A DNA stretch of 64,000 nt from Convolutriloba macropyga. Taxonomy: Eukaryota. Below, in pieces: positions 18,201 to 43,200 of this stretch. Location of the stretch: positions 13,826,001 to 13,890,000 of the forward strand of contig NC_134480.1 of assembly GCF_964194025.1 (NCBI RefSeq), in the 5' to 3' direction. A program made the position numbers and the translations under genes. A model generated the notes under the pieces. It saw only the letters and a list, made by a program, of their open reading frames with translations. It ran no database searches and was not told where the DNA came from. How positions within the stretch are numbered: the first letter of the stretch is position 1; every line of letters starts with the position of its first letter.

Positions 18201-21200
18201 ATTGATGTTTGGCTTGTTTACAGTTTTCCATTAGTTTCATCATCGCTATTTTTGATTCTGGCAATCCCTTCCCGCATTGCTTAGCAACTTCTGGTTCCAA
18301 AAACGACATCAAACGGGAATCGAAATCTCGACCACCCAGAGCTGAGTCACCGGTCGTTTTAACAACGGTGAAAACTTCGTTTTTGCATTTAACAATTGTG
18401 ATGTCGAAAGTTCCGCCTCCTAAGTCGAACACTAAAATCAACTTTTCCTCAAATTCGAAGTTTTTGTCCAAGCCGTGAGCCAAAATTGCTGCAGTCGGCT
18501 CGTGTATTAGCCGGATTACATCTAGCTTGGCAATTTTAGCGGCTGCTAGGGTTGCCTCCCGTTGCTCACTATTAAAATAAGCCGGTACTGTTATTACAGC
18601 CTCTGAAATTTTCAAATCTAAAGATTTTTCTGCTTGTTCTTTCAATTTGGTCAGCAGCATAGCTGAAATCTGTTCAGGTGTCAGTATTTTTTCCTCCCCG
18701 AAGCAAACCAATTTGAACTTGGGTTTGTTGTCTTCGTTGACGACTTCAAAAGTGCAAGACTTGATCAGATCCGCGATATCTGGGTCGTCGAACTTCCGCC
18801 CGATGAATCGTTTTGCGTCGTAGATTGTGTTTCCGACATTCTCGTTTGCCTAAATTTTGGAATGAAATGGCATATTGACTGTCACTTGATTGGTAGTGAC
18901 ATTTTAAGCGTTTTAGAAACAATTTATAATGTGCTTTTGTAGGTACAGTTTTTCTCCGAGACTACACTACAAACAACTTGCTAAAACTCAGATAAAGAGT
19001 AAAAATATATTTGCTCGTTTGTCAACAATTCAAACAAATTCTGGTTATGGCGTGTTCCAGCTCGGAAAACTCTCAGTTTTTTCCTTGTGTTTGTTTGTTT
19101 CAGTGATATAGGTTCACAAATGAGAAAGGTGCACAAAAAAGGTTAAAAAAGGCACATGGTGCGGGAACCCTGCTTGATTTTTTTCACCAGTAATATTTCA
19201 AATCTTACAATTTGAAGAAAACTTAATTGCTGCTCGCCTATTTTTCCACTCACAATTGACACACGTAAAAACATTGATTGAAGTATCGTTGCACTCTTAC
19301 TGACCAATTTACTATGGCATATCAAAAGTGAGTTTCGAAATCCAATGCTCTCTACCCGGAAAACTGTATGAGTTTTTATACGGATAAGACGTGTTCTGTA
19401 GCTGGTTTTTTTGTAGTAAATTCAGAATGTCTCATGGGAGTCTCAAGAGTAATTAATATTAAACTTAAGACTTACCTAACCAGTAAAAGATGCACTTCTC
19501 TTAGTCTAGAAATTTTCTGTTCTATGAGAATATTTAGGCAAAGCATGGGCCCTAATGCTAAAATCTTGTCGTTCATATCTGNNNNNNNNNNNNNNNNNNN
19601 NNNNNNNNNNNNNNNNNNNNNNNNNNNNNNNNNNNNNNNNNNNNNNNNNNNNNNNNNNNNNNNNNNNNNNNNNNNNNNNNNNNNNNNNNNNNNNNNNNNN
19701 NNNNNNNNNNNNNNNNNNNNNNNNNNNNNNNNNNNNNNNNNNTTTTACAAACTCAGACCAATTTTTTTAATCTCAGCCAAAACTGGCCCCGCGGTAAAAA
19801 AAAAAGCGAAACTGATCGCACAATTACGTGTCAAGTAATTAAAAATTGAATTTCATAAATAAACAAAGAACAAATTATAAGCTTCGGGCATTCAATTAGG
19901 AATCCTTGATCGTAACGATATTTTTTAACCGTGATGGTGAGTTTTGGTTTTCGCCATTAGATTCTCAGATTAATAGTTCACGGTACATTTTTCCCTGGGC
20001 ATTTCATTTTCTCCCTTTTTTGTTAATGAACTCTTTTGCTGCCTTTTGTAGACTTGGTAGGGAATAACGTGAAGAGGGCTTAAATGCTGAACGTTAGCTT
20101 GTGGCTTGGCCTTCATCAACTTTTCTGATTCATTTTCAGCGAACAATTCATCGCATAATGATCAAGTTTTCAGCTCTCCTTTGTATATACATTCTCTTAC
20201 TCATCATCATCAGTTTTAATAAACATTCCTGCCAGCAATGTTGTCGCTCTGCAGGATATTCGTTCGCCCTAAATGTTTGGGTAAACTATTTCGTTGGCCA
20301 CTTCCGTTTGCTTCTGGAGCTCCTTAATTTGACGAAGAGTGGCTTCATGTTCGTTTGAATTGCGGCGCCAAATGCTTCTTGTATTCGGCTCATTGACATT
20401 TTTGAGATCTCGGGAACATCAAAACAGCTGTTACGGATGATGCAGAGATCATTGTTTTCCGATGTCAACGTTTTTTTTGCATTGTTTGCCCTAGAGAATT
20501 TTTTGTCACTTCGTTCCTATCCTTACGCGGGATTTTGCTACTAATATCTCTGCATATCCCCGATCTTTTCCGCGTTCAGTTGTTTGTTCCTTCTCCGGCA
20601 GTCTTTGCCGTCTGTTTTTGTTAATACTAGAGGAAGTTTGTGGATATCGTCAAGAGGTCCCCACAGCTGTTTGTTTTTTGTGGGCTCAAAGAAGATACGT
20701 AAGGCATTCCATTTGTGGTCTTAATCGAGTGGAGACATTAATTTTCCGATTTTCTCTCAACATCTTAAAACTGTTTACCTCGTGTATTTTAAAACTGCTA
20801 GTTCAGCTCTGACTTAAAAGTTTTCTCTGTTGAAAACCTTCCGAAAAGAAAACAAAGTAACTATATTTTTCTTTTTCGCCGTGCAATTTTTTTTATTCGT
20901 ACCAAAACAGCGAAAAAGTATAGAAACCCTTGTAACCTGTTCCGTTAACTCTATAATGGGCGCTACAGCTGTTTTGTTGCTTACTATTTCAACATTTGAT
21001 TGCTAGCAGTGCTTGCCTGTATAAAGTTTCGTCCCTGCTGTAAAAAGTTTTTAAACTAGAGAATTAAAAAGTTAGAAAATGATTAAAACTGCAGTTAGTT
21101 AAGATGTATAAAAAGACAAGCCTAAAATATTGAGCCTTTTCTGTTTGTCGGTCACCACAAGCGGCAATAGTTATTTTTACCAAAAAAAATTTTTGTTCGA

Positions 21201-21497
21201 AGATTTTGCAAGAAAAACTCAATCGCTTAAAATGTTGTATAGGTTGCTTTTATGATTTTTAAAAAACCATTATTCGACCCAGATCCAAAAAACGAGGCTA
21301 ATTTGGACTAATGACTACAGTGATCATACCTGTTCTAGGGCTGCTGATCCGATGAGTCGTTGATTGCCCGAGAATGCGACATAAGAAGGAGTAGTTGGAC
21401 TCTCATCTTCGTTCAAAATGACCTGTGCCTCCCCGTCACAGTAACTAGCCACGCAGCACGCACTAGTACCCAAATCTATGCCTATATAGGCAACCAT
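15164..21497 (-). CDS. Divergent HSP70-family chaperone, 5 exons: 21330-21497, 17844-18849, 16907-17217, 16088-16237, 15164-15250 (~573 aa; last exon uncertain)
   Basis: Spliced translation contains GIDLGT, TTPSYVAF, NTIYDAKRFIGRKFDD, AVITVPAYFN, RLIHEPTAA, VFDLGGGTFD, LGGRDFD, LLVGGSSKIPKI, ARGAAIQAA, DVCPLSLGV, FEGER, LGEFVLEGIEPAP. All exon phases are consistent. Confidence 0.92.
16088..16237 (-). CDS. HSP70 exon 4 (lid helix A/B: CEMRIDKAKDRISCRDIQAMLNDEERFRETD...YIEE)
   Basis: TTTTTTAG| acceptor and GAG|GTAAAC donor; aligns with canonical [29 protein letters not shown]. Confidence 0.85.
16275..16592 (+). mobile_element. Dispersed repeat carrying an internal tRNA-like segment (SINE- or solo-LTR-like), in HSP70 intron 3
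   Basis: 16340-16550 aligns with the reverse complement of ~57440-57660. Begins TGTAAG, contains AATAAA; boundaries approximate. Confidence 0.6.
16450..16521 (+). pseudogene. tRNA-like sequence (TGC/Ala-type anticodon loop), degenerate
   Basis: Acceptor GACGAGT/GCTGGTC, D arm GTGT/GCAC, perfect T arm ACTGG-TTTGAAT-CCAGT. The anticodon stem is broken and the T-loop has C->T. Confidence 0.65.
16907..17217 (-). CDS. HSP70 exon 3 (substrate-binding beta domain)
   Basis: Acceptor TGATCAG|ATGTC (an in-frame TGA just upstream forces this site); reads (D)VCPLSLGVAVKAG...RHTGKK; donor AAG|GTAATA. Confidence 0.9.
17218..17843 (-). other. Putative non-canonical GG-AG intron (626 nt) with base-paired termini
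   Basis: Starts GGCTCTTTTTTGAAG and ends CTTTGAAAAAGAGCT-CTGATCAG. The junction restores KSVVLK|DVCPLSLG, matching the HSP70 linker DLLLLDVTPLSLG. Confidence 0.7.
17844..18849 (-). CDS. HSP70 exon 2 (nucleotide-binding domain)
   Basis: Acceptor TTTAG|GCAAAC at 18850, in frame with ORF 17779..18711. HSP70 similarity stops at ...KSVVLK, implying a GG donor at 17843. Confidence 0.9.
19582..19742. other. Assembly gap (N run) within HSP70 intron 1
   Basis: 161 N. Confidence 1.
21330..21497 (-). CDS. HSP70 exon 1 (not in ORF track): MVAYIGIDLGTSACCVASYCDGEAQVILNEDESPTTPSYVAFSGNQRLIGSAALEQ
   Basis: 168 nt, HSP70 signature 1, ends CAG|GTATGA (phase 0). Confidence 0.93.
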
Positions 21498-25099: not shown

Positions 25100-27697
25100 G
25101 GTTCTACTTCTCTTCACCCACATAATTTAACGCCGTATATATTCACCTCTCAGTAATTTAACCCCGCAATTTATTGAACCCGAAATCAGTATAACACAGA
25201 AATCTTTATTTATCTGTTTCTGCAACCTAAAGAACGACTAGCAAAGCTAAAGTTCAAAGGACGTTAATAGCGAAGAACTGCCGACCTTCAGGAGCGCGGC
25301 ATTGATCAGCTTGAGTTTGTTTGAAATCGCAGAATAATGACGAGACTGGTTTTTAAAGCAATGCTATTGATCAAAGAAGAACACTTGACAAATTGACAAG
25401 TCTGATCTCATTTATGTTGCACTTTGATATGAGTCAGAAAAAAATCAAAAAATGTCCTAGTATTGAAGACGGAAAACTGGTACTTTTCAAATGAAAGGAT
25501 GTAACCTAAATATTAAAACCTACTTACTGAGAAGGCATAAAATAGAAATACAAAAGTAAATTTAACCGTGTTTTTAATAGAATTCTCATAGACAAATCAA
25601 TGTTTTTGCTTGCAGCTTTGCTGTGCAAGTTTTATATCTAAATGTTGCAAAACTGTAATCCCAATTAGGGGTCCCATCATAGGGTTAACAACTGGGATCA
25701 AAATCCCTAATGAGTCACAATACAAGGGTTTGGCGTAACTCTGCGAAAGCGCAAGAAGGGCGCCTACTCAAAAACACATACAAACACACATACAAAAACA
25801 CACACACATAAAAAAAACATTTTAATTGCACAACTAAGTGAAACTGGTATTAGCCCGGAAAAAATGAACATCGGTTTCATCGCTGAGTAAGCCTTGTATC
25901 CTATAATGCCAGCCCTCAACAGCATTAGTTTTTCTGGCAATTCTTTTAACGGCGGCGTCTCTTTGATTCCACTTTTGTGGAGGATATAGGAGGACGATAC
26001 AATAGTGGAAACTTGATAGAACTTGATTGGATATGTAAACAAAGCTCGTCTTTTTTCTCAATCACTAAGCTATCTATATGCTCTTGATCCGTCACATTAG
26101 TTATTTCAACTACAATCAATTCAAAAGATTTTTTTAATATTTCCTCATTTTTTTGAAAGCTAGAGCGCGGATTATATTAAGTAGCGGTGCCACTTCATGA
26201 CTTCTTGACAACAGTTTTAAAAGTTCAAAATCTCCAAATTTCCTAAAAATCTTTTGGTTCTAATGGAAATAGCATCCCGATATTATTGAAGCTGGATGGT
26301 GTTATTGAAACGCATTAATTAGGGCAGTTTCAAAATCTAACAGAAATCTTATCGCGCTTGCTTACAGTCGGACGCAAAGTTTTCTTAGGCATCAAGTAAT
26401 CGGCTCTATGTTTGCTCCATTTGGTTTGGAAGGAGGGCATACAAACAGGCAGGAGCATTAAAAAACGAGAATATATACATGAAGGGTAGAAATTTGTTAG
26501 AAATCTTGAGTGATAAATTAAGTGTTCATCCGCAAGCCAAAACCGCGAATCTCCGAGAACCGATGTCATATACGGATCACCAAGTTTAAAATACGCTCAT
26601 ATTTTCCATCGTCAAACCAGAAATCTCTTGATACGTGTCGGGTATATCAAAATACTGTTCCGACGGTTCAAGAATTGACACTGTTTGCATGTTCTTTCTT
26701 AAACGCTGCGATGTTTGTATTAAAACTGGTTTTAACGGCAACGCATACTGCGTTGAGAGAACGTCACTTGCTGGTAAAATTGTGGAAGCTTCGGCTCCTG
26801 CGGGCGTTTTGTTTTCACTCAGGAATTTGACTTCTCTTCTAACTTTTCGTATGGCTGGCTTACCAATGGAAGCATTATGATTGTGCTCACCGTGTACGCG
26901 AAAAAGTTGGCCATCTTGCGTAAATGTGGAAACGTTTGCATACAATGTTTGCATTTTCTTTATCAAACGCTGCATTGTTTGTATTAAATTTGGTCTCGAC
27001 GGCAACATATACTGGGTCGAGAGGACATCAGTTACTGGTAAAATTGCGGAATATACGGCTGCTGCGGGCACTAGATCTTCACTCAGGACTTTGATCTTTT
27101 TTATACATTTTTGTGTGGCCGGCTTACCAATAGAAGCATTATGATTGTGCTCACCGTGTACGCGAATAAGTTGGCCATCTTGCGTAAAGGCGGAAACGCG
27201 GCATTGTAATTTTGATATTTTGAGCAATTCCAGGCAGTGGTGAACTGATTTGTTCTTTTAGGATAAAACTCCTGGCCCTCTACAACCTATTTTTTTGGAT
27301 TTGGAAGAAATGGTAAATTCAAAGTCGGCAGTTATCATGCTGATTTCAAAATGCAATGAAACAAGAAATGTTGAGCTCCACTCTTTTTTCAATTGTTTTT
27401 AATTATAGCTTTGCTTTAAACTATTGAGTCGTTAGCTCTACATCCCTGACAATAATGATCCTCGATTTTGCGGATTAAAATTGGGGTGAAATGATTGAGG
27501 TGTGAAAAGCATATTAACACCTCAATCATTTCACCCCTATTTTAACCTCTGTTAATTAGACTGAATAGAATTGATTGAGGCCTAAGTTTCCTCAATTATA
27601 GGAAGCTTAAAATGGGGGTGAAACAATAGAGGGATTAAGAAATTGAGGGGTTATATGATATAGGGGTTTAAAATTCGGGGTGAAAAAACAGGACTCC
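25100..27697 (-). mobile_element. Decayed Mutator-like (MULE) DNA transposon with degenerate long TIRs and a 9-bp TSD
   Basis: Flanks AATTTCTAC (25091-25099) and ATTTTCTAC (27698-27706). TIR subrepeats (ttcaccc/ggggtgaa) at ~25100-25190 and ~27480-27697. Contains transposase remnants. Confidence 0.85.
25880..27338 (-). pseudogene. FLYWCH zinc finger + MULE DDE transposase pseudogene
   Basis: Across frameshifts and stops: EFYPK..AWNCSK..CRV..HGEHNH (FLYWCH), RFWLAD, ACLYALLPN, FLLDFETALINAF, SGCYFH, LYPPQKWN, KTNAVEGWH. Confidence 0.9.
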
Positions 27698-27912
27698 ATT
27701 TTCTACATAGGCGAGTACGTAGACATGAAATTAAATAATTGTGTCGGTATTAAAAATGCTCATGAAAGATGGGATTTTCTGTTTTTTTATTATATAGTTT
27801 TGCAGAATGAAAACAACTGAACAACAATACACGGCGTTTTTCTCTGCTTCCATTATATTCATAACCGATTTTTTTCTGTGCAGTACTTCACCACCTTCAC
27901 TTCCGAAGAAAG

Positions 27913-30900
27913 ATGTCTTCGGATAACTTTACGACGTATCGCACCAAAGCGAGTAATCTAGAATCGAAGCTGAACAGTAAAATGGCTCCAGCCATCCAGG
28001 AGCAGCAATTGGACGATGCGTATGGATTCTACCGCAAAGCAGCAGAAAGTGCCAGAAATGGCGATGACCTTCAAAGTACGCTGAAAGATGTTCAGAGAGT
28101 ACTAATAGAGAAGATGAAATTCTACAGGAATTGCTTAAGATTTTCTTTAAGTTTTCGCTTAACATTTTTTCATTTCTTGAATCAAACAGCGGCAAAATTG
28201 CTCAATATTTATTAGGTCTTTTTATTAGGTTTTTATTAAGTTTTGTCTAGAAAAGTTTAACAAAATGTCGTTGCTGCTTGTGTTAAAACTGTTAAATACT
28301 TTGATTTTTTTTGAATAGCGCTAAAAATTAATATTTGCTAGTTTTTAAGTCATATAAGTTCCCGGTCGAGGTGTCACCGCTAAAAATCGCTAAAAGATGT
28401 AAGATTTGCAGTGAATTTGAGGAAACAGTGTAAGCTTTGCGCTCAATGCGTTGAATTCGGTGAAAAAACTTTTAATTGGTGAATAAATTTTTTCAACGCT
28501 TAAGCGGTGAAAAAAAATTCACCGCTACCAGCAGAATGCGGTGAAAAAAAATTTCACCGTTACCAGCAGAATGCAGTGAAAAAAATATTTTCATCGCTAC
28601 CAGCAGAATGCGCTGAAAAAAAATTGCAAATCTTTTTAATATTTGCCGCTATTTTCAACGCTTGTCTTAAATTCACAGGAAATATCATTAATGTATGTGA
28701 GAGATTGCGTAGTGGAATAAAAAGTTGTAGACATGCAGGAGGTGCGAGGTTCGAAACCGTGTACGGTAGTTTTTTTTGTAAGGAATGCGGTGAAAAAATT
28801 ATTTCACCGCAAATCTTACAAAAATTCACCGCATTCAACGCTAAAATATGCGGGCACTTTGCGGTGAAAAAAGTTTTTTTTCACCGCTATTCACCGCTAA
28901 TCTTACATTATTTTTTGACCAAACCTCGACCCGGGTTGGTTATAACCTGAAAACCAAAGTAAAATGACTTCTCGGGTCAACAAATTATTGCACATATTTG
29001 CACGAAAATGCCTGAAGTCGCTGAATTTTCACAATGTATCTCATTCAGCGATTATTATAGAAAATTAAATATTATTTCTTTAGCTCATATTTATTTTTAA
29101 CTCAGCGCTGAGAATAAACCTGTACTCGCATTATCATCAAGGCGATAGCTGATTATAAAGATTCATTCGATTAAATAATTTTGTTCGGTTGAAGTTGATA
29201 TTTTATAAATATGCACACTGAAAAAGGGATAATCGCCAAATTGGCCGGCAGTGTTTTAGCCGAAAACTTAAAAAATGGTATCCGAGCCGACAACCCACCG
29301 GCACACCATTTTTAATGCTCGGACGAAATAGGGATGTTTCGAGCGGTACACGCAAAGGAAGCCGAAGTAAAAGTAAGCCGACAGAAAAGCAAGCTGAAAG
29401 TTATGCAATAGTTACGTAATCTATCAGAAATAATACATTGTTAGCCGTTGAAATTAAAACTGCGCGTAGTATTACAGTGCATAATGTATTCCAATGCACC
29501 AAAGAAACAAAAATACGTCAATTTTTAGACATCTAGTGGGTGGTGTTAGGACAATAGATCGAAAAACAACAGATCGAAATCAAAAACTGGGACAATAGTA
29601 GATCGAAAATTAAATTGTTTAAGATGCGTTTTGGCCAATCATATTTGAGTGCTCATTTATTATACAGCATATAACAAGTTCTGTTGCGATATTTTGTTCG
29701 GTTGTGATGGATTAATATCAAGTCCCATGGTCCGCTAAGGCATGGCTATGGCTCGCGAGGCATGGTCAGAATGTGGTAATTATTGCAGCTGGCAGATAAT
29801 GCTCAGTTTCAACCAATAAGAATAGAGATTGATTTTCGATCTATTGTCCCAAGTTTTTGTTTTCGATCGGTTGTCCTTTCCATCTATTGTCCGGTCACCC
29901 TAGTGGGTAAGGGCCTCGGCAGACCGCTGTCCATGGCCATGCCTCTCATCCGCTGTTGGATGTAATCCCGAAACCACGGGCCGCGGCAAAGCCGCGACGC
30001 GCGCAAAGCGCGCTCACCCGCCCGCCAGGAGCAACTTAAAATACGGGTATCCCAAAATACGGATTACTTGACCTCATTTTCAAAATAGGCTTGCTTGCCT
30101 ATCAGCTTACTTGACCACCACCGTTTCGACCGGTCTGATTTTTCGACTAATCAGAGTTAACCTTGCGGGTAAATTTCTCATTTCTTCATGTCGGCTGAAA
30201 CCCACGTCGGCCAATAGTGCCACCAAAGAAAAATTGATTAAAAATTTCAAAAAAACAGTTCCTCTTAATAGAAAAAATCCCCAATACTGTACCAACTACT
30301 GGCAAGCCGTTAGTAAACTAATTGAAGATATATCGTATCTTCACAGTCGATTACGTTTCAAAACTGGCAGCAATCAAAAAGCCGATTTTGGAAAAATTCC
30401 AGAAGAAATTGACCGGATTCTGGACGACGTCGAAAAGCATATGTGGAGTAACATAGACCCGTACGAAGCTTCATGTTTAATGTTTGGCTCATTTGCCCAA
30501 GGAGCCGACAAAAACGCCATGGGTTTCAAACTATTCGCCAATTACAAATATGCGGACTATCTTTTCAAAGAGGGTGTGAAAAGTTTGGAAAATGATGAAA
30601 TGTTATTAAACGCTAGGAAGGTGTTCAAAGAGGCGTACACGCCTCTAGAAGCTGGTCAGTATATAATCGACAGGAGTAAAAGAGTCGAAGGGATATTTGA
30701 GAACGAGAAGAAATGGCTGGGAAAATGGGAGAAAGAGTTCGAGATTAAAAGGAATGAGGTTCTTATGGAGTCTAAAAGAACGGATGCAAAAATTTTGCTT
30801 CAAGAAAGGATTTTTCTGATGCGAAAATTTATGAATGACTCTTTAAGCTAACTAAATCAGGAATTCCTGAAACAAATGGAAAACCGAACTTTTTGACGAG

Positions 30901-33900
30901 TGCAAACCCCCCCCAGCTTTGTCGGTTGATATGGTCATATGAGTTGCAATCCCGAGCGCCTTCACCTTTGTAGAATTTTTCGTAATAATAATAATAATAA
31001 TAATAATATAAATATTTTTAATAATAATAATAATAATATAAAGGCACGTGCTTTGTAACTGGGCATCCATTACGCACTGGAATTAGGGGGGGAGGGGGCG
31101 TACTTTTTTGAATAAAAAGTATACTGCGGTTACAAAATTGACTGCGACCCTTTAGTACCAAACAAAACTTTTCTGTTCTGGTATGTTAAGAAAATATGCT
31201 GCTGAATAATAACACTATACACAAATTGTTTGAATCAGAAAAATCCTTTCAACTTAGGAAGCTGAGAAACAACATTTGGACGCGATTACAAATAAAGAGG
31301 TATTTGGTCTTGAGGATGCAATAGACATTTATGACTTGTACCATCAGGTACTCACAATCGCGAGGGATTTCGATATTGAAATTGAAGCCCATGTCTGCTG
31401 CAAAATGGGAGTTTATCATTACAAGATTCTACATTTCCCGGACAGGTATGTATTTCCCGAATTTCCATTACTTCTATTTCTACTAATTTTTGTACAAGAA
31501 TTTCTTGGAATAGAAAAATTACTATAAAAATGATTGATCTGAAATATACAAATGAGTCGTGACAATTAAAAGTTGTAAAACAATTAAAAGTTAGAGCAAA
31601 CTGATCTATATTGCAGTTTTATTCTAAACTGAAGACCCGACTGTGTGGGTGTTTCAGAAAATAACGAGAATTGCCGATTACATAGGCTGCCTTTTGGGAG
31701 GAGCTATTGGTACATTTTGTAATGACATCGTATCAAGTCTGGTCTCAACAAAAAGAAATATAGCTTTTCAACAGTTTTGCTTTTAGTCTAGCTCAGTCAA
31801 AGTCTGTAGTCACCAATCGTTGCTCAGTTACAATGGTGCTTGTGCGAGCACCTTAAAAACAACCACTGAAAACCAGACAGAATCGTTGGCTGTCAGATAA
31901 AAAAAGTTCAATGAAAAGGGCGAAAACCCGGTTGTGCAGGTTTGTTGCGCTAAAGTGAAAACCTGATTGTGCGGGTTCAAATGCAGCTATGTTGTTATAT
32001 CAATTACTGATTAATTTTGCTATATGTAATCATGATTCAGTTATCAACATTAACCGAGTGTTTCATAACCAACAAGTATTTTCAATAGACAGTCTGTTCC
32101 TTGAACTATAGATCTTTTGTAGTTAAGACGCTTACATCAATAGCAAAATTTGTATCTACAAATATGTACCACTTCTGAGTCTTTTTCTTTCAAATTTTGC
32201 TTTGAGAAAAACGAAAATCATTTCTTCCAAAAATATACCGAGCAAAAATGTTAATTTAGGAAAAAAGAATAGTGTATAACCGTAGCGTAGATGTTGTTTA
32301 TAGGGCAATGAAATGTTAGATAAATTGTAGTTAGTCTCCTAATCTACTACTTATTGTCAGCTTGGATAAAAACACAAATAAAAAACAGAAACAGGAAAAC
32401 AAATTATATAGCAGATTGACTAGTTTTAGAGAACATAAAAAAATTAACTTCGGTAAAATTATAAATTGCACAAAATACTCTCAATTTGATAGTCAAACCA
32501 ACAATTGTCTATAGGCATGTACCTATTATTATCAGTGAAAAAGGTTATGTTATCGCAACACGAAACGTATGGTTGACCTTTATGCAGAAACTATGTGTTT
32601 TGTCACTATCACCTGACTACTGACATTCAGTTTGTGTGGTACTTGCTACCTAATTATCATTTAAAAAGAATGGACTCACAGAAAATTATTATTTAGAGAA
32701 CAAAAGTCTAATAAAACATTTTACATCATTAGCTGGAGGTCACTGGATGCGACCTTTTTCAGTGCCCTTTTGTGACCTTTTTTCAGAGCTTAACATTTCA
32801 TTCACACTTGGTTTTAACAGAATGAACTCTTGAAATGACCATTGAACTATTTTGTGAAAACGCTAATTCAATTACGTTATCAAGTAGTTTTCCTTAACTT
32901 TTTTTAGTATGTAGTTATTGGTTTTCAAATGCACCTCAATTTCGACAAAAATTCAATTCAGCGACGTTTTAGACATATATGGCTGATCTCAATAATTTAT
33001 TTACTCATTATTTGAGGTCTTTGTCTTTTTGCAAGAATCTTGCAAGATAACCGTTCATCTTGCAAGATCTTGCAAGATAACCATACATCTTGCAAGATCT
33101 TGCAAGATAACCCTTTTTCGCAAGATTCTTACAAGATCTTGCAAGATAGACCATCCGGTCTCGCCTGGGGTAACAAACATATTTATCAGCAAAAATGTAT
33201 TTGTTCTCAAATATGATACGAAAGATAATAATTATTTTGAGAACTCAAATTTTCAGTCTTTTTTTAATACGAAGGTACAAAAAACAGCTGAAATCATGGG
33301 GCTAGTTTGGTGACATACAAATTATTGATAAAAATATTTACATAACCTAAACCTAAAGTATGTTTTCAGAGAAAAAAATTTGTTCAAAGATCGATATAAG
33401 TTAGCTATGACTTGCAAAAATTAAAAGAATGACCAACTCTCGAAACTTCTCTTTTGGAATCATTTTTTGGGTAAAATAGGAGATCCATTTTGGCATTTCA
33501 ATTAGGACTTTAAGACACAATATTGTAAAGCACAATGAAGTTGAAATATTCACTTTTACCAGCAAAGAAAAGGCGCGGAAACTGTTCCAGAGATCAATTC
33601 AATTGGCACTCAGCTTGAGTCCGAAAAACGTCACAAAAGAAGATTGGTATAAAACAGCCGAAAACCATGCCAGGGAATTACAGAAACAGCAGCAGAAAGC
33701 CGAACATGTGGAGAACTTGACAGAGCGTGAAAAATTCAGTGAAGAATTGCAAACCCTGAAAACGTTCTTGGAGAAAAACGTCGAATTTGATCACAACTTG
33801 AAAACAGAGCTGAACAATTTGTTTAATCAATACGAACCCAAGTGCAAATTTGACAGAGAAAGTTTTAATGAAATATCTTCTGACAAGGTTAGTGTACGTT

Positions 33901-34253
33901 CTTATTGTTATTTTTAGGGTTTTCGAGAAAAGTTTTTCTTGGGTTTTGCTAACTTTTCTCCCCTGAGCAATATTAGTGGGTTACATGTCTCTGATTACGT
34001 CACTGAGACCCTCTGGCGTTTATCGAGGATCGCAAAGCAGATATTGTGCCAGAATTTTGAAGTGACTTCTGCAGAGTCACGTAACACAGGTAAAAAAAAC
34101 GTAAAATGTAAGTTTAAAAGCGCCAGAAGTTCTCCGATGTCGACATCTGGCTTTGTATATACGAAAAGGCGGATATTTTCAATATTTTCCATTTGTGTCC
34201 CCCCAGTACGTTTTGAATCCCCAGTTGCAGAACAGGTGCCATTACATAGTTAA
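27913..34253 (+). CDS. Helical TPR-like protein with a C-terminal J-domain-like segment; exons 27913-28127, ~30155(or 30194/30218)-30803, 31258-31445, 33563-33887, 33918-~34253
   Basis: Five phase-compatible coding segments with TPR-like helices (LDDAYGFYRKAAESA, IYDLYHQVLTIARDFDIEIEAHVCCKMG, KEKARKLFQRSIQLALSL). Introns 3 and 4 are canonical GT-AG; intron 1 and 2 donors appear to be GA. The tail past ~34186 is MITE sequence, so the true stop is uncertain. Confidence 0.7.
28361..28935. mobile_element. MITE with CCCGG(G)TCGAGGT termini, TT flanks and GCGGTGAA/TTCACCGC subrepeats
   Basis: Left tt|cccggtcgaggt, right acctcgacccggg|tt. Internal B-box-like GGTTCGAAACC at ~28748. Degenerate inverted copy at ~48215-48480. 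Confidence 0.85.
29350..30122. repeat. Second copy of the 23190-23595 repeat, split by a nested MITE
   Basis: Homology resumes exactly after the 29542-29899 insert. Confidence 0.9.
29542..29899. mobile_element. MULE-type MITE (358 bp) with a perfect 9-bp TSD CTAGTGGGT
   Basis: TSD at 29533-29541 and 29900-29908; TIR GGTGTTAGGACAATAG / CTATTGTCCGGTCACC; empty site present in the paralogous repeat. Confidence 0.93.
30804..31257 (+). other. Putative non-canonical GA-AG intron (454 nt) with a perfect 17-bp terminal stem
   Basis: 5' GAAAGGATTTTTCTGAT (30804-30820) is the exact reverse complement of ATCAGAAAAATCCTTTC (31234-31250), followed by AACTTAG|. Junction gives ...DAKILLQ|EAEKQHL... Confidence 0.75.
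30983..31040. repeat. (AAT)n microsatellite, two blocks
   Basis: Directly visible. Confidence 0.9.
33028..33170. mobile_element. MITE right-arm remnant with CTTGCAAG 30-bp repeats ending CCTGGGG|TA
   Basis: Tandem tcttgcaagatcttgcaagataacc units; related remnants at 17430-17470, 45090-45140 and 61062-61298. Confidence 0.7.
33888..33917 (+). other. 30-nt GT-AG micro-intron
   Basis: AAG|GTTAGTGTACGTTCTTATTGTTATTTTTAG|GGT. Removes an in-frame TAG and joins ORF 33603.. to ORF 33939.. in frame. Confidence 0.65.
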
Positions 34254-37200
34254 TCATTGAGTATAAAATATAGCGTTTGGGGGGTTTACAAACGGAAGAT
34301 CCAAAACATTTGGCATTATAGAATTTCTTGTATTGGTTAAATGACTCTGATGAAGCCACTGGAGAAGACTGGCATTAGTCTAGAAACGCGAAGCGGACCG
34401 AGATGTTTGCCAGAGTTTCGAAATAACTTTAACAGAGCCACGTAATCATTTTGAAACACGCGTTGTGCAAGTTCAGTCAATAACGTTTTACTTGCAAAAG
34501 TGATTACGATTTTTGATTGCGAAGAGAATATAGCTTTCGGGTTATATGCCCCCATCCAATTAGTGCTTATAGTTACACCCACATACTGCAATTGCACGCT
34601 CGTAGCAGCACGCCGATCACCATTTTGGAGGTTAGGTCTTAAATGATTTTTGGGAACAGAAATTATACTATTACTGCATAAAAGACAGAAATATCACTTT
34701 TGCAGACAATCAGCCCTTTTCTTTCCTAATGAACCATTTTTGATATTTTGACTTTTGAATCAATTTTTGGTCTTTTCCGTTTGTAGTTTATGTCCCCAGC
34801 ATAGTGGCTGCATATTGAATGCAACCCCCAGACGAATTTGCCATATTTTTTAAAAATGATTTACAATATAATAGCAATGCTTTGTAACTGGGGAGAATAA
34901 CCTACTTGGGGCCACAAACGAAGATTTTTTTCTGCTATAAGTATAAATTGCATTTTATACAATGTTCTTGTTTTTTTTTAAAAAAAAATAAATGAAAAAG
35001 GTTATTTTTCCTCCATAAAAGATGGCAGACAAGTTTACAACACTAGCAAAAACGAACTGCGAAAACCTTCAATGGTTGAAAAACCTTTGGGGAAGATTGA
35101 TTGAAGTGTGTGTTTGAAGTGAGAAAAGAACCGGATACTGTCTTCTACGGAACTGTGATTCACATGTTCTTTTTTGGGGCTCTAAATACCAACGGATATG
35201 TTCCGCTTGCGTCCCCATCTTATTGCCAGCATAAAATTTGCAAAATTATTCAATATGTAATAACACGTGCTCTGTAGCTGAGGGGCGACTTACGTACTGG
35301 GGACACAAACAGAAAAGTTTCGTAAAAGCTGTACATTTGTCTTAAGTGAAAAGAACGTTTTTGCATGTTTGAGTAGTTTCAGATCTGGCACTGCATGAAG
35401 AAAGATCTGGCATTCTAAAATATGGTACTGTCAAGGTCTGGCATTCTAAACCTTGCACGTGAGTGTTTCAAGTATAGGTTATGTGAGTCTGATGAAATCA
35501 CTGAGATTGTCTGGCTTTAATCGAGAACCACAAAGCGGTTCGAGATTTTATGCCAGAGTTCCGAAGTGGCTTTAGCAGAGTGGCTTTTTTGAAACATGCG
35601 TTGGGTAAATTAGCTTAAAAACACCTTACTTGTAGAAAAGATTAAAATTTGTCTTTGCGAACGAATAAATTTTTGGGGATATACATCCCCTATCCAATTA
35701 GTGTTTATAGTTACACCCACATACTATAATTCCACTTTTATGCCAGCAAGCTAAACACCATATTGGAGGGTAGGATGTAGTTTTTGGGGAAACCAATAGA
35801 TGATAAAAACATGAAAATCACTTTGCAGACTATTAGCCTTTTTGTTTTCCTGATGAAACTATTTTGATGAACATTTTTTGACTTTTGAATCAATTTGGGA
35901 TCTTTCTCATTTCTGCCATAGTGTGTGCATATTATTTGCAACCCCAAGACGCTTTTCCGTGTATAGTGATAAAGCATATAATAGCAAAAGCTCTGTAACT
36001 GGGGGATCATAACGTACTGGTGGGTGGTGCACAAACGGAAGAGATCCCATTTCTGCTATATGTTTTTATTACATTTTATCCAATTGTTTTCATTTTTTAG
36101 AATAAAAGAAAAGTGTTAGTTTTCCTAATTAAAAGATGACAGACGGGGATACAACACTGGCAAAAACTAACTGTAAAAAACTTCATTAGCTGGAATGCAG
36201 ATAATATGCGTTCACTAAGCTGGAGAGGGGGAGGAGGGGTTGGTACAAACGGAAAAAATCACGATTGACACGTGCTCATTTAGTGGGGCTCTATGTAACA
36301 ACGGTACATTCAATGTCAAAGGAAGAGCACGTTTTTTTGTTTGACTACTTTAAGATCTGGCACTGTAAAATGGAAGATCTGACATTCTCAAGTCTGGCGC
36401 TTTTGAAATCTGGCATTCTAAAGCTTGCAAATGCGTGTATTAACATCTTATTATGGTTTTGACTTTGCTTTCATTGTTATGATTGAACAAACTATTGTGG
36501 GTTTGGGATGGAATTATCCAAAAAGAAAGTTTGGATTTTTTGCAGTTTGCCCCCAGCCTAATTAGTGCATATTATTTGCACCCCCAAAACACCATTTAAT
36601 GGCACGTGCTCTGTTACTGAGGGGTTACTCTAAAATATGTTTTAGAGAGGCATAGGGGCATGGAATTCCAAAATGTGGGGGGGGGGCAGATTCTAAGAAA
36701 ACCTTTCAAACAGATAGGAGAGCAACACTCCTATTTTATTCCCCCTAAGTAAATTTTATAGCTCCTCCCGATTCCAATCCAATCTTTTTGAACAGTTGTG
36801 ATTGTTTGAGAGAAAACATGCGCGTGGTTGGGTATAAATTTCAAGGATATCTTCCGTTTGTGCCCCAGATAAGTGGATGCATATTATTTGTACCTCCCAG
36901 TGACACTTGCAACAACTTACATAATGATTTACCATGTAATGGAAGGTGCTTTTTAATTGAGGTGCATAACGTACTGGGGGTTGGGGGCACAAACGTAAAA
37001 TATCCTTTGGATCTATTCTGTTTCGGCCCCCAGTGTTTTTTATGACCCCCCGTTACAAATTATATATTGCTATATAGAACGTTACTATGTAAGAAAGCAG
37101 CACGTGCGACTGGGGGTCATAAAAGATTTATGCTCACTAAGCTTGAAGGCGGCGAAACAGAATGGATCCCATCCCATTTATAATTTTTGCTTTTCAGAAT

Positions 37201-37352
37201 AAAATGGCGACCTATGATAATATTAATGTTTGTGCCCCCGCCAGTTACAGAGCACGTGCCCTTACATATTAAATCATTATGTCAAAACACTGCACGTGCT
37301 GTTGGGGGTGCAAATTATGAATGCCCACTAAGTTGGGGAGCATAAATGGAAG
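34186..37352. repeat. Cluster of nested/duplicated MITEs with TTCCGTTTGTGCCCCC-type termini, including an imperfect duplication with ~1.15-kb offset (34340-35070 vs 35485-36180)
   Basis: Termini at 34186, 34905-34925, 35290-35316, 36010-36040, 36850, 36985, 37228, 37335; related copy at 9040-9125. Confidence 0.7.
37009..37169. mobile_element. ~160-bp MITE with GGATC(T/C)ATTCTGTTTCG TIRs
   Basis: TIRs visible at both ends; a near-complete inverted copy lies at 44335-44485. Confidence 0.85.
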
Positions 37353-37559
37353 GGAATAAAAAAACTTCAAATTTCCACATACCACGCTTGTCGAACTATG
37401 TCAATATATATTTCATAGTGCAATTTTTTACTGAAAACAGAGAAATCTCAAGATTTATCGTACAGGAAATACTAATGAGAATGCACTCAGCTTTTTGTGA
37501 CGCTGCAAAATATCAACAAAAACAATTTCAGTGTAAAACAATTGGGTTACTGATATAAT

Positions 37560-40250
37560 TGTTCCGACCCACTCCATTGGGGGATGAACTATACACTCCA
37601 CTGAGTAATTTTTGTTCAGTCAATTGTCGCCTATTGGTATATCCATCGTACAGAGTTGAGAGCGGTATCATAAGAAAGCTTGACAAATGTAGACTTTCAA
37701 AAAATATATTTTTCTTGAATTTCGTTTTCTGCGAGTGCGAGGAGGTTTAATGTTTTGCGAATTATAGCGTAACTTCTGTTGTTTTAATCACATTTTAATT
37801 TTTGTCGTAAAATATGCCTCAACTTTGATTGGTTTATGCTAAAAACATTAAAAAAAAAGCTAAAGGTGGTCTCAATAGTTTAAAATTTGAAGATAAAGTG
37901 GAGCTGACTAAAAGTCTGAACCACTGTATTCGCTAAAAAAATTTTTGAAAATTTTGCATTATTGATATTTCCTTCATGGAATTGGCATCAAAACGCTTTT
38001 ATGGCGCACTTTGTCACAATTGAGATTTCAAAACAGCTGAAATAACTTTCATTAATTCAGATAAAGGCAATCTGTACCTTCGGTTCCTAAAAGTTTTCTG
38101 AAACTAACGTTTTAGCGATATTTCGCTAATTTAAATCGATATGTTTTAAAGAATTGAAACACTTATGTTTAATTTATCAAGTTTTTGTTAGCCAAAAAAT
38201 CTATCACGAATTTTTTGTCTTAAAATTGGGTTTTTTATCAGCTGGATGCCAAGGTCAACTTCAGTTCTTTTGTTTGTTTTTGCATTGTCAAAAAGGGTTC
38301 CTACTGTCCATTGGATCTGTCCTTTTGAACTACTTTTTCAATTTATTCATACTATTTGAAGGCAAGTGTGTTTTCAAATCAAACTTTAGCTGAAAAGAAG
38401 TTAATTTTATGTTCAATTGAGGTCCAATTATTTCTGGTTAAAGCGTATGGTGTTTATTGCTCGGACAAATTGTTTTTTGTTTTTTTTTAGATGAACTCTT
38501 GAGTTTTTCCAAGTTCTGTTGTTCGTTTTGTAATCTTTTAATTGAGTCTAATTTACCAAATGTAAAATTCAAAGGAGCTCGAAGGAGCTAGAACAAAACT
38601 ATCTAATGCTTTCAATTGAAACATAACCGTTTATGGATATTAGATCTGAATAATTATCCAAGAAACAACCTTTATTTTTGATAATTTGTCTTTTTGGTTA
38701 TATGTGCTCTTTCGGTAACCATTAGATTTTTTGTTTCAATGGAAAACCAGCAAAAATAATTCCACTTTTTGCCTTGTTGTTGATTTTCACATTTCAATAC
38801 ATTATCAGATTATAGAGGAAAGCTGTGCTTTTTAACAAAATATGTTTTGTTTTTTTTTTGTTTTTTTTTCCATGTTAGCTATAGACCGGAATGAATTCAA
38901 CTCAAATTTAGCTTCTAAAAAGTAAACTTAAATGCAAATGGAAAAAAAACTTAAATGATATTAAATGATATATTCAATGAAAAGATCATTTTTTTCCGCT
39001 TTAAAATATTTCGGGTAAAATTGTTTCCTAAAATTCGAGCTCTGTCTGTACTCGGTTTTGTTTTGTAGTATTTTGACTTAGTTTGACTAATGCTATTTCT
39101 GATTGGCTTCCTCGTTAGTAAAATGTTAGTCTATTTAATGATTGTTATTTGAAATTCAATGGTTAGTTTGTTTTCAAAATGAATTAAAGTTTTTTTTCGG
39201 ATTAGCAACTTTGAATCTTATATACGCTATTTTCAGCGTCATCTCAGCAGGGAGAAAAGCCACTTTCTGTTTCAAATGAGAAAAATAGTCTAAATTTATT
39301 TTAGTTTAATTTTTTTTTGGCTTTCATAATGAGAGTTTTCATAACTTTTTTTTTCATTTTTGTTCTTTTCCCGAAATTCTGAGGTTCTTTTTGCTGTCTT
39401 GTCCGATTACAAAATTAATAAAAAACCAGCAATCACCATACTTGAAATATAAGAAGTTGTTTTTTTGTTCCGCTTGGCTTTTTTTATTGATTACTTCATG
39501 ATCCTATAGGCTCGACGCCGTTTCCTCGCAAAATTGAAATATCTTTTTGACTTTTGACTGTATTTGTTCTTTTCGTTGTTGTATGACATTCCGGATAATG
39601 AAAAATCTGAATAGCTTCGTATGGAGCTATAAAAGGAACCATTTAAAGGTGTTGGTTGAGAGCAAATGGTTTTATGACTTTGAACAATTGTTTACAAATT
39701 GTAAAACATAATTTTTAACTTTGCCCCTTTTTTGTTTTTCGGTCTGTTTGTCAATTATTCGCCAAATTACTGATCGCTAGTTTATGATTGCTCCTTCAAG
39801 TCTCATTTCTTTTCTGGTGAAATGTAAGTCAATTGGTTTATTTTGCTTTTTGTCTGGTGCTTTTTTGACTTATTCGTTGGTTTTTTAATAAAATAGATAG
39901 ACATTGAGTTTTGGTCTTACGTAATGCTCGTTGTTTTCGGTTCAGTTCTGTTGTTTATCTTGTCTTTTGCCCTCTTTAATGGCAAGCTTCATCGGACCTC
40001 GACGGATTTGTTATTGATTTTGTCTAGTGGTTTGAGCTGAAAGAAATGTGCAAAATGAATACACCAATTATTTTCCAACAGTATATGAATTTTTGAAAGT
40101 TTTTTTTATCTTCTCCTCATTTGGTATATAATTAAGTCAAGAACGTGGATGAGCGATGTTGGAACATTAGGTGCAAACACACCATACCGAGCCTCCGTGT
40201 TTGTCGTTTTTGTTAAAAATGTCCACATTTTTTCAGACAGGCTGCACTAA
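37560..40250. mobile_element. Degenerate copy (left arm) of the long-TIR element at 45181-53170
   Basis: Starts TGTTCCGACCC...GAACTATACACTC like 45181; interior 40100-40200 resembles 47750-47835. Right boundary not determined. Confidence 0.55.
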
Positions 40251-43200
40251 TATTTATCAATTTCACAGAAATTTAGTTTAGAAAAAACTGAGAAAACGTC
40301 AAAAATCAATCGTTGATATTTTTGTTGCACTAAAAAGATTACAGAACTGAAATCGTGAGCAAGCATCATGATGTTTGCTAGTTGGTCATTGATAAAGATT
40401 CTTGCCAAGATGATCGCTAGTTCTTTAATTCATCGGTCACTAGGGTACTGATATTACAGACTGGGCAATTAAAATTACTCAGTATTGACGTGGCTTTAGG
40501 CCGAACATTGGCGGACAAAAATATGATTGTTTTTAGAAGATGGTTCTCAAAGCGCTGACCTGGTACCATCCTGACAAACAACAATCAAAAGATGGAAAAT
40601 TATGGGAGCTGATGTGTGAAGACATCTCAAGTTATCTCAACAGAATGCTTGAGAAAGTCAAATTATGAGCGGGTGGTTGACACAATGCCAAAGCGTTTAT
40701 TCTATCAGTAACATTTTCCAAACTGAACTTTTGTCAAAATGTTGTAAATTATTTCTTGAAAGTCACTCATAAAGTTTTTAACTATTAATTTAAAAAAACA
40801 TTTTGGAAAGTTCTGACCGCAACTAAGAGCAGTAGAACAACTGGACGGTATAATAGGAAGAGTTCCAGCATAAAATATATTTCTAAAATAAAAAACTCTG
40901 GGGTAGTGTTGGGGAGGGCACAGTTTGAATAACAGAAACACAAAACCCCAACCCGCCTTGTTTCTTGACCTAATTTAGGCTCTAAAAATTAATTTGTGCG
41001 GCAAGTTAACATAATAAACGCTGAAAATTCCCGACCTGCATTTCGCAGAATCATAATTGACTGAACAAAAAAATAGACATGGAAATGACGATGAAAGGGA
41101 AAACCAATTTAAAAAAATTCCGCTTGTGAACAAAACAATAGAGCCGCATGTGAACCCAAAAACAGCAGGACAAGTCCTGACATACATTTCAGAGAGTTTT
41201 CATTGACTAAACACAAAACTAGGCCACAAATGGACTATGACTTCATTGGGAAAACCATTTAGAAAATTATCCTACAAAAAAATTAAAAAAACAGTAAAAA
41301 TCAAACCGAAACTTCTGTATGTGAACAAAAAAAGACTAGCGAGAAAGCAAAGTTTTGTTCATACACCATTTTGTTACTGCACTTTAAACTTAGAATGAAT
41401 AAAATTCACGTCGCAAATCACTCGCTTTTTTGCTCCACTTCCTGTTTCGGCTTGACCAAATTCATCTCTTCAATTTGACTGCAAAAATCATGAAAATGTG
41501 TGATCAGATCTTTAAAAAAGACAACGCCCCATTACAAGTCAAATTCTTTGAATTTTAATAAATCATATTTTCTTATATATTTTAGAAGCGCAGATAAAAC
41601 CAAAACTTTTCATTGGTCCATTTGGTATCATAAAAAATGTTTGCGGAACAACACTAAATCAAAGCTGTAATAGGTCACAAATGTTGAAACAAAATAAAAA
41701 ATGCAAGAAATTGAAGTAAAAAGGTTCAAATTTCTCATTATCTGTCAATTTTCTCAAAAAAACTGTTTTATCTCATCAAAATTGCAAAAAAAGACATCTT
41801 TAATTTTCATTGAGCAATATGCGTCTATTCAATCTCCAGTAAAAGAAGAAACGGGCAAAAAATTGCTTAAACAGTTTGAAAACCACAAAAATGCTGCTAA
41901 ACCTACAAATGGATTAGAGTTGAAAGTAAGAAGCAAAGATCTTCAAACAACACAAAAACAATCAAAACGCTTAAATATGGCCCATTCAAACTCCTTAAAT
42001 AAAGAAACGGTCAAAACTAATGAAAGGGCGTAAAAAAGCTTCACTCGAACCCAAAAAGTTTGCTAGCCTACAGCGAAAATTTTCGCAAATCAACTTCTCA
42101 CTCAATCAAAAAGAGCGGTTTGAACAAAAGTCACTATCTTTTCTCTCCACTCTCCGATTTTGTTCAACAATCAAACCTCTCTAAGTTTTTCACGCATTTC
42201 TAATTCTTGCCTCAATTTCACTCAAAAATTTCGATTGAAAAAAGACACTTCTCCAATACTCTTCTTTGAGTTGTAATAAAACCAAAACCTCAATTTATGT
42301 CAAATTCATTAAATTGTTATAAAACGAGAGTACCATAATTCATTTTCGCAAAACTTTGAATGAAAATTTATGAAATTGCTTCTAAAGTCTAATAATACTT
42401 GTTGGCTATACATATTTTTACGCTTTCTGTTTTTCTTGGCATGGGTACGATGGCTGCAATACGCTGAATTATGCTCATTTAGATTTTTTGAGAGAGTCTC
42501 TTAAGAGTCGAAAGCTAAATTTTCAATATTTTACTAGATCACTAAAAGCCCTAAAAAGGGTATTTTTGTAAATTTTGCCAAGAATCTCATTAAGGAGCAG
42601 TCTGCTATTACCGAATGTATTATAGCAGTACAAAGCAGAAAAAAGCGAGCCAACACTAAATTCGCAATCGAATTGAATATCTTTTGTGTTTTGTAAGTTG
42701 GCAGTGTAATTTAAGTTGTCTTTCAAAAACACTTTAAATTGAAGAAAACAATAAATAAACTTGAACTTATTGCCAGTTTTTTGCAGAAAAATGATAAAAT
42801 AATGAAGTCGTTCAAAATTTAGTTTATGATCGGGGTTGTGGAAAATGACACTTCATCTGTGTTAAAACATATATTTTACTGTATAAGCCCTAAGCGCTCA
42901 AGAAACTTTCAGATACAAAAAAAAGTCCTTTAAAACAAATCGTTTTTCATAGAAAATCTGAGCTAAAATAAAACGTCAAGTTACGTCCACAAAAGCGGAA
43001 CATAAAATTTTGCATTATTTGCTTAATTAGAGAGACTAATGCTCTAGCCTAATTCAGTTTGTTCAATTCCGTGAATCAGCATTGTAAATTAGGTTTTTTC
43101 GTTTTGACTTTCAAGAATCAGTCATTGATTAAATTTAAGAAACATGGTCAGTTCAACTTCAATTAACAATTCGTAAAATTGTTTTATGGTTCATGCCCTC

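Follow-up and report, generated by a model that had tools for sequence, protein, structure and literature searches.

How can a coding sequence that continues in a single frame be interrupted by a segment that begins with GA rather than GT, and what would bring the two ends of such a segment together? These questions are raised by a five-exon gene in a 64,000-nucleotide (nt) stretch of the genome of the acoel Convolutriloba macropyga (contig NC_134480.1, positions 13,826,001 to 13,890,000 of the forward strand; hereafter the window, whose first letter is position 1), and the 1.18-Gb genome of this species was searched in the analysis. The reading frame runs through ...CTT CAA to position 30803 and resumes in the same frame with GAA GCT GAG from 31258, and the intervening 454 nt (intron 2, 30804-31257, forward strand) are bordered by GA and AG. 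An initial annotation, made by a model from the letters alone, had described a stem-bracketed intron here, and its direct observations were upheld: a recheck of the sequence confirmed that 30804-30820 is the exact reverse complement of 31234-31250, imperfect pairing continues past these 17 nt to give a 27-nt inverted repeat (30804-30830 with 31224-31250, 85% complementary), the helix begins at intron position +1 and stops 7 nt ahead of the AG, and an alternative donor, GAG/GTTCTT (GT at 30759-30760; slashes mark exon-intron borders), does exist upstream, is in frame and would cost 15 amino acids (aa).

In this helix, +1 to +17 pair with -24 to -8, which leaves AACTTAG (31251-31257) as a 7-nt unpaired tail that carries the AG acceptor and may hold the branch adenosine. 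The duplex formed by the first 30 nt and the last 45 nt has a calculated energy of -28.4 kcal/mol, compared with -9.0 +/- 2.6 kcal/mol for shuffled sequences (0 of 500 as low), and in a sample of 5931 random position pairs drawn from the window just 3 are as low (0.05%). The helix is far beyond chance, and in the minimum-energy fold it closes the entire intron (z = -3.7). The two halves of the intron are complementary only at their tips, with no complementarity beyond ~30 nt, which excludes a long foldback element.

The donor context, CAA/GAAAGG, does not have the usual G at exon position -1 (in the other haplotype the exon ends in CAT) and has A at +3. A GAA direct repeat (30804-30806 = 31258-31260) allows four junction registers, and an intron ending in AG is obtained only with GA..AG, so that both the G at +1 and the 3' AG are present. 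U12-type signals were not found, as the 5' end reads GAAAGGAT rather than RTATCCTT and the TCCTTAAC branch consensus is absent, and no Rfam family scored above chance in 30700-31350. All three DNA samples carry the insertion, read depth is even over the introns in four DNA runs, and none of the joints listed for the DNA runs skips intron 2 (30803 to 31258).

The position of the junction was determined by comparison with uninterrupted relatives. A related species was reached via a 65%-identical relative of an HSP70-like gene (~15956-21497, reverse strand) that stands head-to-head with the gene under study (27913-40668, forward strand); the best C. macropyga match of this relative is the gene in the window, and the gene pair is kept in the related species, whose contigs come from European Nucleotide Archive (ENA) assemblies ERZ25071366 and ERZ25878734. 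There, the ortholog is a single uninterrupted open reading frame (ORF) of 316 aa spanning exons 1-3, to which our spliced model aligns with 43% identity over 310 aa and one 1-aa gap that is far from both junctions. A tblastn search of the ortholog ORF against the window placed aa 79-256 at 30273-30803 and aa 258-319 at 31261-31446, with aa 256 at 30801-30803 and aa 258 starting at 31261. A second, partial ortholog copy on another contig also reads through the intron 2 site without interruption, and three intronless paralogs align over this site with the same gapless 53-residue spacing. Because the alignment to the uninterrupted ORF is gapless at the junctions, both GA..AG junctions, that of intron 2 and that of intron 1 (28128-30271, CAG/GAATTG ... 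TTAATAG/A), are exact to the codon, and the absence of both introns from the ortholog and the paralogs indicates that they are insertions of the C. macropyga lineage. The paralogs were also checked for covariation in intron 2, and none of them contains it. With the junction 30803/31258 fixed by the ortholog ORF and the intronless paralogs, the proposal of a GA donor in preference to the upstream GT held, and on these alignments it is highly probable that intron 2 is a real intron that is removed exactly at its GA..AG borders.

A second helix intron and the comparison of haplotypes

The HSP70-like gene provides a second case, 13 kb from intron 2. Its second intron (17218-17843, reverse strand) is bordered by GG and AG and also has a terminal helix, in which pairing starts at +1 with a G.U pair and ends 8 nt before the AG, leaving the tail CTGATCAG. 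The energy of this duplex is -19.0 kcal/mol, and 1 of 500 shuffles was as low. The junction splits the Asp codon of the invariant D-V-x-P-L-S-L-G motif and is collinear with the BiP chain 6hab_A, where the exon ends at ~390, the Asp is residue 391 and the next exon begins at 392, and the HSP70-like ortholog of the related species is uninterrupted at this site. The corresponding RefSeq protein, XP_075259883.1 (412 aa), has the first canonical intron spliced and then reads through the GG intron to a stop; as a consequence of this read-through, it is without the intact substrate-binding exon (16907-17217). The other two introns of the HSP70-like gene, whose model spans 16070-21497, lie at 18850-21329 and 16238-16906 and are canonical GT-AG introns. 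The related species has a canonical intron (CTAG/GTGAGT, contig 6993-7030, set against window positions 17196-17217 and 17844) in its HSP70-like gene 21 nt downstream of the GG-intron site and in the same phase, which could reflect an independent gain or intron sliding.

A second haplotype of the locus was available in ENA assembly ERZ25071359 and was compared over window positions 27448-34081. The variants at 30519, 30524, 30542, 30617 and 30635 occur in the DNA runs, and this copy is therefore a segregating haplotype. The two haplotypes are very divergent in this region (27448-34081 and 16907-18700), with differences of 2-5% in exons and of 10-16% plus many insertions and deletions (indels) in introns, where these can be aligned at all. 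Exon 2 differs by 14 synonymous and 4 non-synonymous codons, a ratio that indicates purifying selection on the gene.

Intron 2 is present in both haplotypes with identical GA..AG borders. Its interior (30831-31197) carries 47 substitutions in 301 aligned nt (16%) together with 95 gap columns, and none of the 34 nt in the two 17-nt core arms is changed (P ~0.003 at the interior rate). The 7-nt tail is likewise unchanged, and a single change is found in the last 60 nt of the intron. At the 5' end, the first difference between haplotypes falls at 30821, which is the first unpaired position. Identical runs counted from +1 extend over 17 nt in intron 2 (GA), and they also extend over 17 nt in the HSP70-like intron 2 (GG), the two introns with a terminal helix. 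The runs measure 6 nt in intron 1 (GA), 2 nt in intron 3 (GT) and 2 nt in the HSP70-like intron 3 (GT), all of which are without a terminal helix. The GA of intron 1 is retained in the second haplotype, and the 5' end of intron 3 differs at +3 and by a deletion of 7 nt. A comparable pattern was seen for the HSP70-like gene, where the exons of the second haplotype are 95-98% identical and the interior of the GG intron cannot be aligned, while the 3' arm and the initial 17 nt of this intron match exactly and form a helix of -17.5 kcal/mol. A run of 17 invariant bases whose end coincides with that of the helix is not accounted for by ordinary splice-site conservation. From these alignments, it is well supported that the helix arms of both introns are selectively conserved.

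Comparison with the related species also bears on the donor dinucleotide. Intron 3 of the ortholog (ERZ25071366 contig, 6083-9448) starts with GG (CAG/GGATCT), and the C. macropyga intron at the same codon position starts with GT, which makes position +2 evolutionarily labile even in an intron that both species share. The ancestral introns, which are shared, are GT-AG. Four introns are peculiar to the copies of the two genes in the window, and among these a GA or GG start is seen in three and a GT start in one (intron 3).

Proposed role of the helix and competing explanations

Taken as a whole, the locus probably contains a lineage-specific GA..AG intron of a functional gene that is removed by the spliceosome with the aid of a selected helper helix. 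According to this proposal, intron 2 would have been inserted into a once-continuous exon and would now be removed at its GA..AG borders. Pairing of its first 17-27 nt with the segment whose end lies 7 nt ahead of the AG would form one large hairpin and set the 5' splice site beside the 3' tail with its acceptor and, possibly, the branch adenosine. The major spliceosome would carry out the removal and, in this lineage, would tolerate A or G at +2, and the terminal helix would be a selected helper that joins the two ends and offsets the weak donor CAA/GAAAGG. Splicing itself, the agency of the spliceosome and the helix as a cause of function are what we infer from sequence, and we consider a functional need for the helix to be quite likely. 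A broader version is more tentative, and we would give it somewhat less than an even chance: introns of this type would be widespread in acoels, with sites set mainly by the terminal helix rather than by U1-GT pairing. The helix, running from +1 to 7-8 nt before the AG, would be under purifying selection while the remainder turns over freely, and it would permit any purine at +2 as well as a poor flanking consensus.

A number of observations weigh against a role for the helix or against splicing as proposed. Intron 1 has a GA donor and no terminal helix (-8.1 kcal/mol, not significant), and no pairing partner for its 5' end was found anywhere near its 3' end; nor does the GG intron 3 of the ortholog have a significant terminal helix (-10.7 kcal/mol). 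These two helix-less non-GT introns imply that a helix is unnecessary for the use of GA or GG. The arms are simply invariant and show no compensatory change, so they might be conserved for a different reason, for instance as a protein-binding site. A 17-bp helix starting at +1 would also have to open for U1 and U6 pairing, and, should the 3' arm contain the branch point, the same would apply to branch-site pairing. The sample is small, with two introns that have a helix set against four to five controls. The sequencing runs that contain the locus are DNA runs from one study, so splicing is inferred from sequence, and a protein spliced from exon 2 to exon 3 is absent from annotated public protein collections, in which exon 2 of this gene occurs in no annotated protein. 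Finally, we read the truncation of XP_075259883.1 as a limit of the annotation pipeline, but it could also reflect real retention of the GG intron.

The idea in the initial annotation that the splice sites are defined by RNA structure is accordingly weakened by the helix-less GA and GG donors, and the helix is better described as an aid than as the sole definition of the sites. Its expectation that end pairing should distinguish non-GT from GT introns was examined on few introns and was borne out in part: a helix occurs in two non-GT introns and in none of the four GT introns of both genes (end-pairing of -6.8 to -13.9 kcal/mol, within background), and two further non-GT introns are without one. 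The helix-less non-GT donors fit AG/G-R-A (CAG/GAA and CAG/GGA) and the helix-bearing donors break it (CAA/GAA and AAG/GGC), which suggests, with no more than four cases to go on, that the helix compensates for an unfavourable donor context. A blind search of the window for inverted repeats whose removal would yield long ORFs was too noisy at 40-50 codons, and only the two known cases stood out. One GC..AG candidate from 36863 to 36017 has a 20-bp terminal repeat and was rejected as an intron, since the sequence is repeat-like and does not look coding. This segment (36017-36863, reverse strand; terminal inverted repeat GCACAAACGGAAGA..., -31.9 kcal/mol) probably represents a miniature transposon.

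The possibility that a modified U1 small nuclear RNA reads these donors was addressed through the 22 U1 genes that were found. Several have altered 5' ends, and all keep the A opposite +2, the partner of a U in that position; the use of GA or GG is therefore not explained by any of these U1 variants. Eleven copies have the canonical 5' end ATACTTACCTG, four have TTGATTACCTG, four have TT(C/T)AAAACCTG and the other variants are single. The loci, which lie above the Rfam cut-off where scored, include C15:12297861-12406847, C7:54712531-54719795, C7:49259914-49260077 and C10:13477038-13481642. The variant copies might read different donor contexts or be pseudogenes.

The inverted repeat could instead be the relic, without a present role, of a transposon that gave rise to the intron, in a lineage whose spliceosome accepts GA and GG donors. 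Neither the ortholog nor the paralogs have the insertion, miniature transposons typically end in inverted repeats such as the 27-nt one seen here, a GAA direct repeat of 3 nt is found at the borders of intron 2, and GA or GG donors without a helix occur in intron 1 and in intron 3 of the ortholog by the same collinearity argument; this is also the origin that is accepted for the cases in Fritillaria and dinoflagellates (PMC11282704). Against such a relic, the termini of neither helix intron recur in the 1.18-Gb genome, and a whole-genome DNA search for copies of intron 2 returned short internal fragments only. There is no clean target-site duplication, as the direct repeats at the borders amount to the 3-nt GAA or a degenerate 9-mer (CTTCAAGAA versus CTT-AGGAA), a symmetric element leaves the 7-nt tail unexplained, and only the terminal ~27 nt are complementary. 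Above all, the arms are invariant beside a decayed interior (16% substitutions plus indels in intron 2, unalignable in the HSP70-like intron). An origin by transposition is thus possible but unsupported and would leave the present conservation unexplained, and we regard the relic explanation as rather unlikely. A kinship of intron 2 with a satellite was also considered and rejected: the 18-nt terminal-repeat pattern hit only an unrelated satellite, whose GAAAGGTTTTTTCTGATG arrays match no more than ~18 nt of intron 2, one mismatch from the 5' arm, which is attributed to chance. These arrays form a tandem satellite with a period of ~360 bp (C7:31.75 Mb, C8:53.92 Mb, C12:43.56 Mb and C16:41.98 Mb).

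The remaining alternatives dispense with the GA donor, with splicing or with the spliceosome. If the insertion stayed in the transcript, the product would be a truncated protein ending at the stop codon at 30849-30851, or the locus would be a pseudogene. Automatic gene calls do run on into intron 2, there is no annotated spliced protein and RefSeq truncates the HSP70-like gene within its GG intron, but exons 3, 4 and 5 are open and 45-62% identical to the ortholog, the 14 synonymous versus 4 non-synonymous differences in exon 2 speak for a constrained protein, the insertion is exactly frame-restoring with AG at its end, and the HSP70-like gene behaves likewise, with its substrate-binding exon intact; an unspliced insertion is therefore very unlikely. 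Joining the upstream GAG/GTTCTT (GT 30759) to the AG at 31257 would give a protein that is 15 aa shorter and has the merits of being in frame and of starting with GT. It would, however, delete VLMESKRTDAKILLQ, whose gapless counterpart in the ortholog is VSMETKRVESKLLLK (8/15 identical), and break the 53-residue spacing that is fixed in all paralogs, and GTTCTT is unlike the canonical donors found here (GTATGT, GTTAGT, GTAAGT and GTGAGT), which makes use of this donor scarcely credible. A non-spliceosomal, helix-guided excision by a euglenid-like endonuclease-ligase would account for a helix that begins at +1 and, in two unrelated introns, stops at a fixed distance of 7-8 nt from the 3' border, for the near absence of U1 complementarity in the intronic part of the GG donor, and for the retention of the A that pairs with U at +2 in 22/22 U1 genes. 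Such excision is nevertheless highly improbable, given that G at +1 and a 3' AG occur in every case, that the exon ends are mostly the spliceosomal-like CAG or AAG and that helix-less GA and GG introns occur in the same gene; we also know of no helix-guided endonuclease-ligase machinery in animals.

The gene and its surroundings

With the GA introns included, the gene model consists of five exons on the forward strand and encodes 463 aa. Exon 1 (27913-28127) is open from an ATG and collinear with paralog and ortholog, exon 2 (30272-30803) is delimited by the tblastn match to the ortholog ORF, and exon 3 (31258-31445) is delimited by ortholog and paralog collinearity and by tblastn. Intron 3 (31446-33562) is canonical, with GTATGT..CAG borders, and exon 4 (33563-33887) follows from collinearity. 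The canonical intron 4 (33888-40536, GTTAGT..TTTAG) is ancestral, since its position is common to the paralog XP_075260760.1, a C. macropyga RefSeq protein encoded on the same chromosome, and to the ortholog. Exon 5 (40537-40668) is the last coding exon, with the stop codon, and contains a J-domain-like ...WYHPDK... motif. Very high-copy repeats occupy ~28350-28950 and 29350-30150 of intron 1, where contig depth reaches up to 10^5.

No Pfam family was matched by the 463-aa protein, and when 1.8 billion representative proteins were scanned in full with HMMER, the only matches were a read-through ORF of the locus and the paralog XP_075260760.1. The gene family appears from these searches to be confined to the acoel lineage. 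The HSP70-like gene, which is divergent, and the WYHPDK gene head-to-head with it may constitute a chaperone/co-chaperone pair, and further copies of both families are clustered at 19.58-19.80 Mb on the same chromosome (C13). Between the two genes lies an ORF (26586-27227, reverse strand) with two GEHNHN-containing repeats, which we tentatively liken to a FLYWCH-type zinc finger. The third intron of the HSP70-like gene harbours, on the strand opposite to the gene, a tRNA-like sequence (16450-16521, forward strand; Rfam tRNA, 41 bits), which may be either a tRNA gene or a repeat derived from a tRNA. A trypsin-like gene at 44.5-45.1 kb of the window added no introns to the comparison.

Relation to known non-canonical introns

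In the literature searched, we found nothing relevant on non-canonical splicing or introners for acoels, Xenacoelomorpha, Convolutriloba or Symsagittifera. The suggestion that intron 2 belongs to an undescribed intron class therefore stands insofar as no acoel description was found, and it falls short insofar as inverted-repeat non-canonical introns and GA or GG donors are known elsewhere. Acoels are often placed at the base of Bilateria. If the proposal is correct, a bilaterian lineage would join the few eukaryotes with many non-GT introns and would provide a natural system for studying whether RNA structure can replace splice-site sequence, with conserved arms beside freely changing interiors and with helix-less non-GT introns serving as controls within the same gene. 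If the broader version were also true, these introns would be a bilaterian counterpart of euglenid introns and could explain why few conserved genes are recovered in acoel annotation. Such introns may distort acoel gene sets and, with them, the view that genes were lost in acoels; the BUSCO completeness of the C. macropyga assembly is only 69% (PMC13650328).

Non-canonical introns bracketed by inverted repeats are known from Fritillaria, dinoflagellates and euglenids (PMC11282704; 10.1101/2025.08.15.670264). The introners of the larvacean Fritillaria borealis, described by Henriet et al. (2019) and summarised in the same two sources, mostly have AG-AC or AG-AT borders and belong to repeated transposon families with target-site duplications (PMC11282704; 10.1101/2025.08.15.670264). 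As in Fritillaria, the acoel case concerns an animal with ancestral GT-AG introns and species-specific non-canonical ones, whose ends are inverted repeats and whose insertion into coding sequence would be made harmless by removal. Unlike those of Fritillaria, the acoel introns keep the G at +1 and the 3' AG and vary only at +2, and they have a unique sequence, no clear duplication and a 7-8-nt tail.

GA and GG donors are also used by the copepod Eurytemora affinis, where AG is required at the exon end and A is almost invariably found at +3 (PMC5714493), and have been reported for Oikopleura (PMC7072748). Intron 2 does not follow the exon-AG rule of Eurytemora, as its exon ends in CAA, and has the A at +3. 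The acoel and copepod introns have in common GA or GG donors with a normal AG acceptor, lineage-specific positions, a requirement for full-length proteins, a canonical U1 5' end and compromised automatic gene models. End-to-end pairing is not reported for Eurytemora, however, and the helix-bearing acoel donors break the AG/G-R-A pattern.

In the nonconventional introns of euglenids, +4..+6 pair with -8..-6, the borders are variable and non-GT/AG, circles are excised and the machinery is unknown (PMC11282704, PMC12501133). The acoel introns resemble them in having an end-to-end helix that joins the borders and a short unpaired 3' stretch before the border. Euglenid-type features were otherwise not found in intron 2, where the borders keep G at +1 and AG and pairing involves +1..+17 and -24..-8; its helix is 17-27 bp long and starts at +1, and the host is a bilaterian animal. 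The introners of the dinoflagellates Amoebophrya and Polarella form repeated families with 3-5-nt direct repeats (PMC7789003; PMC11282704). They share with the acoel case non-canonical borders and terminal inverted repeats at recently gained introns, although acoel intron 2 has neither a family nor a clear direct repeat.

End-to-end pairing also shortens the effective distance between splice sites in some introns of yeast and Giardia, which have GT-AG borders and pairing that does not start at +1. The acoel helix, in contrast, starts at +1 and closes introns with non-GT borders, and its conservation points to structure-assisted splicing of a kind for which no description in acoels was found.

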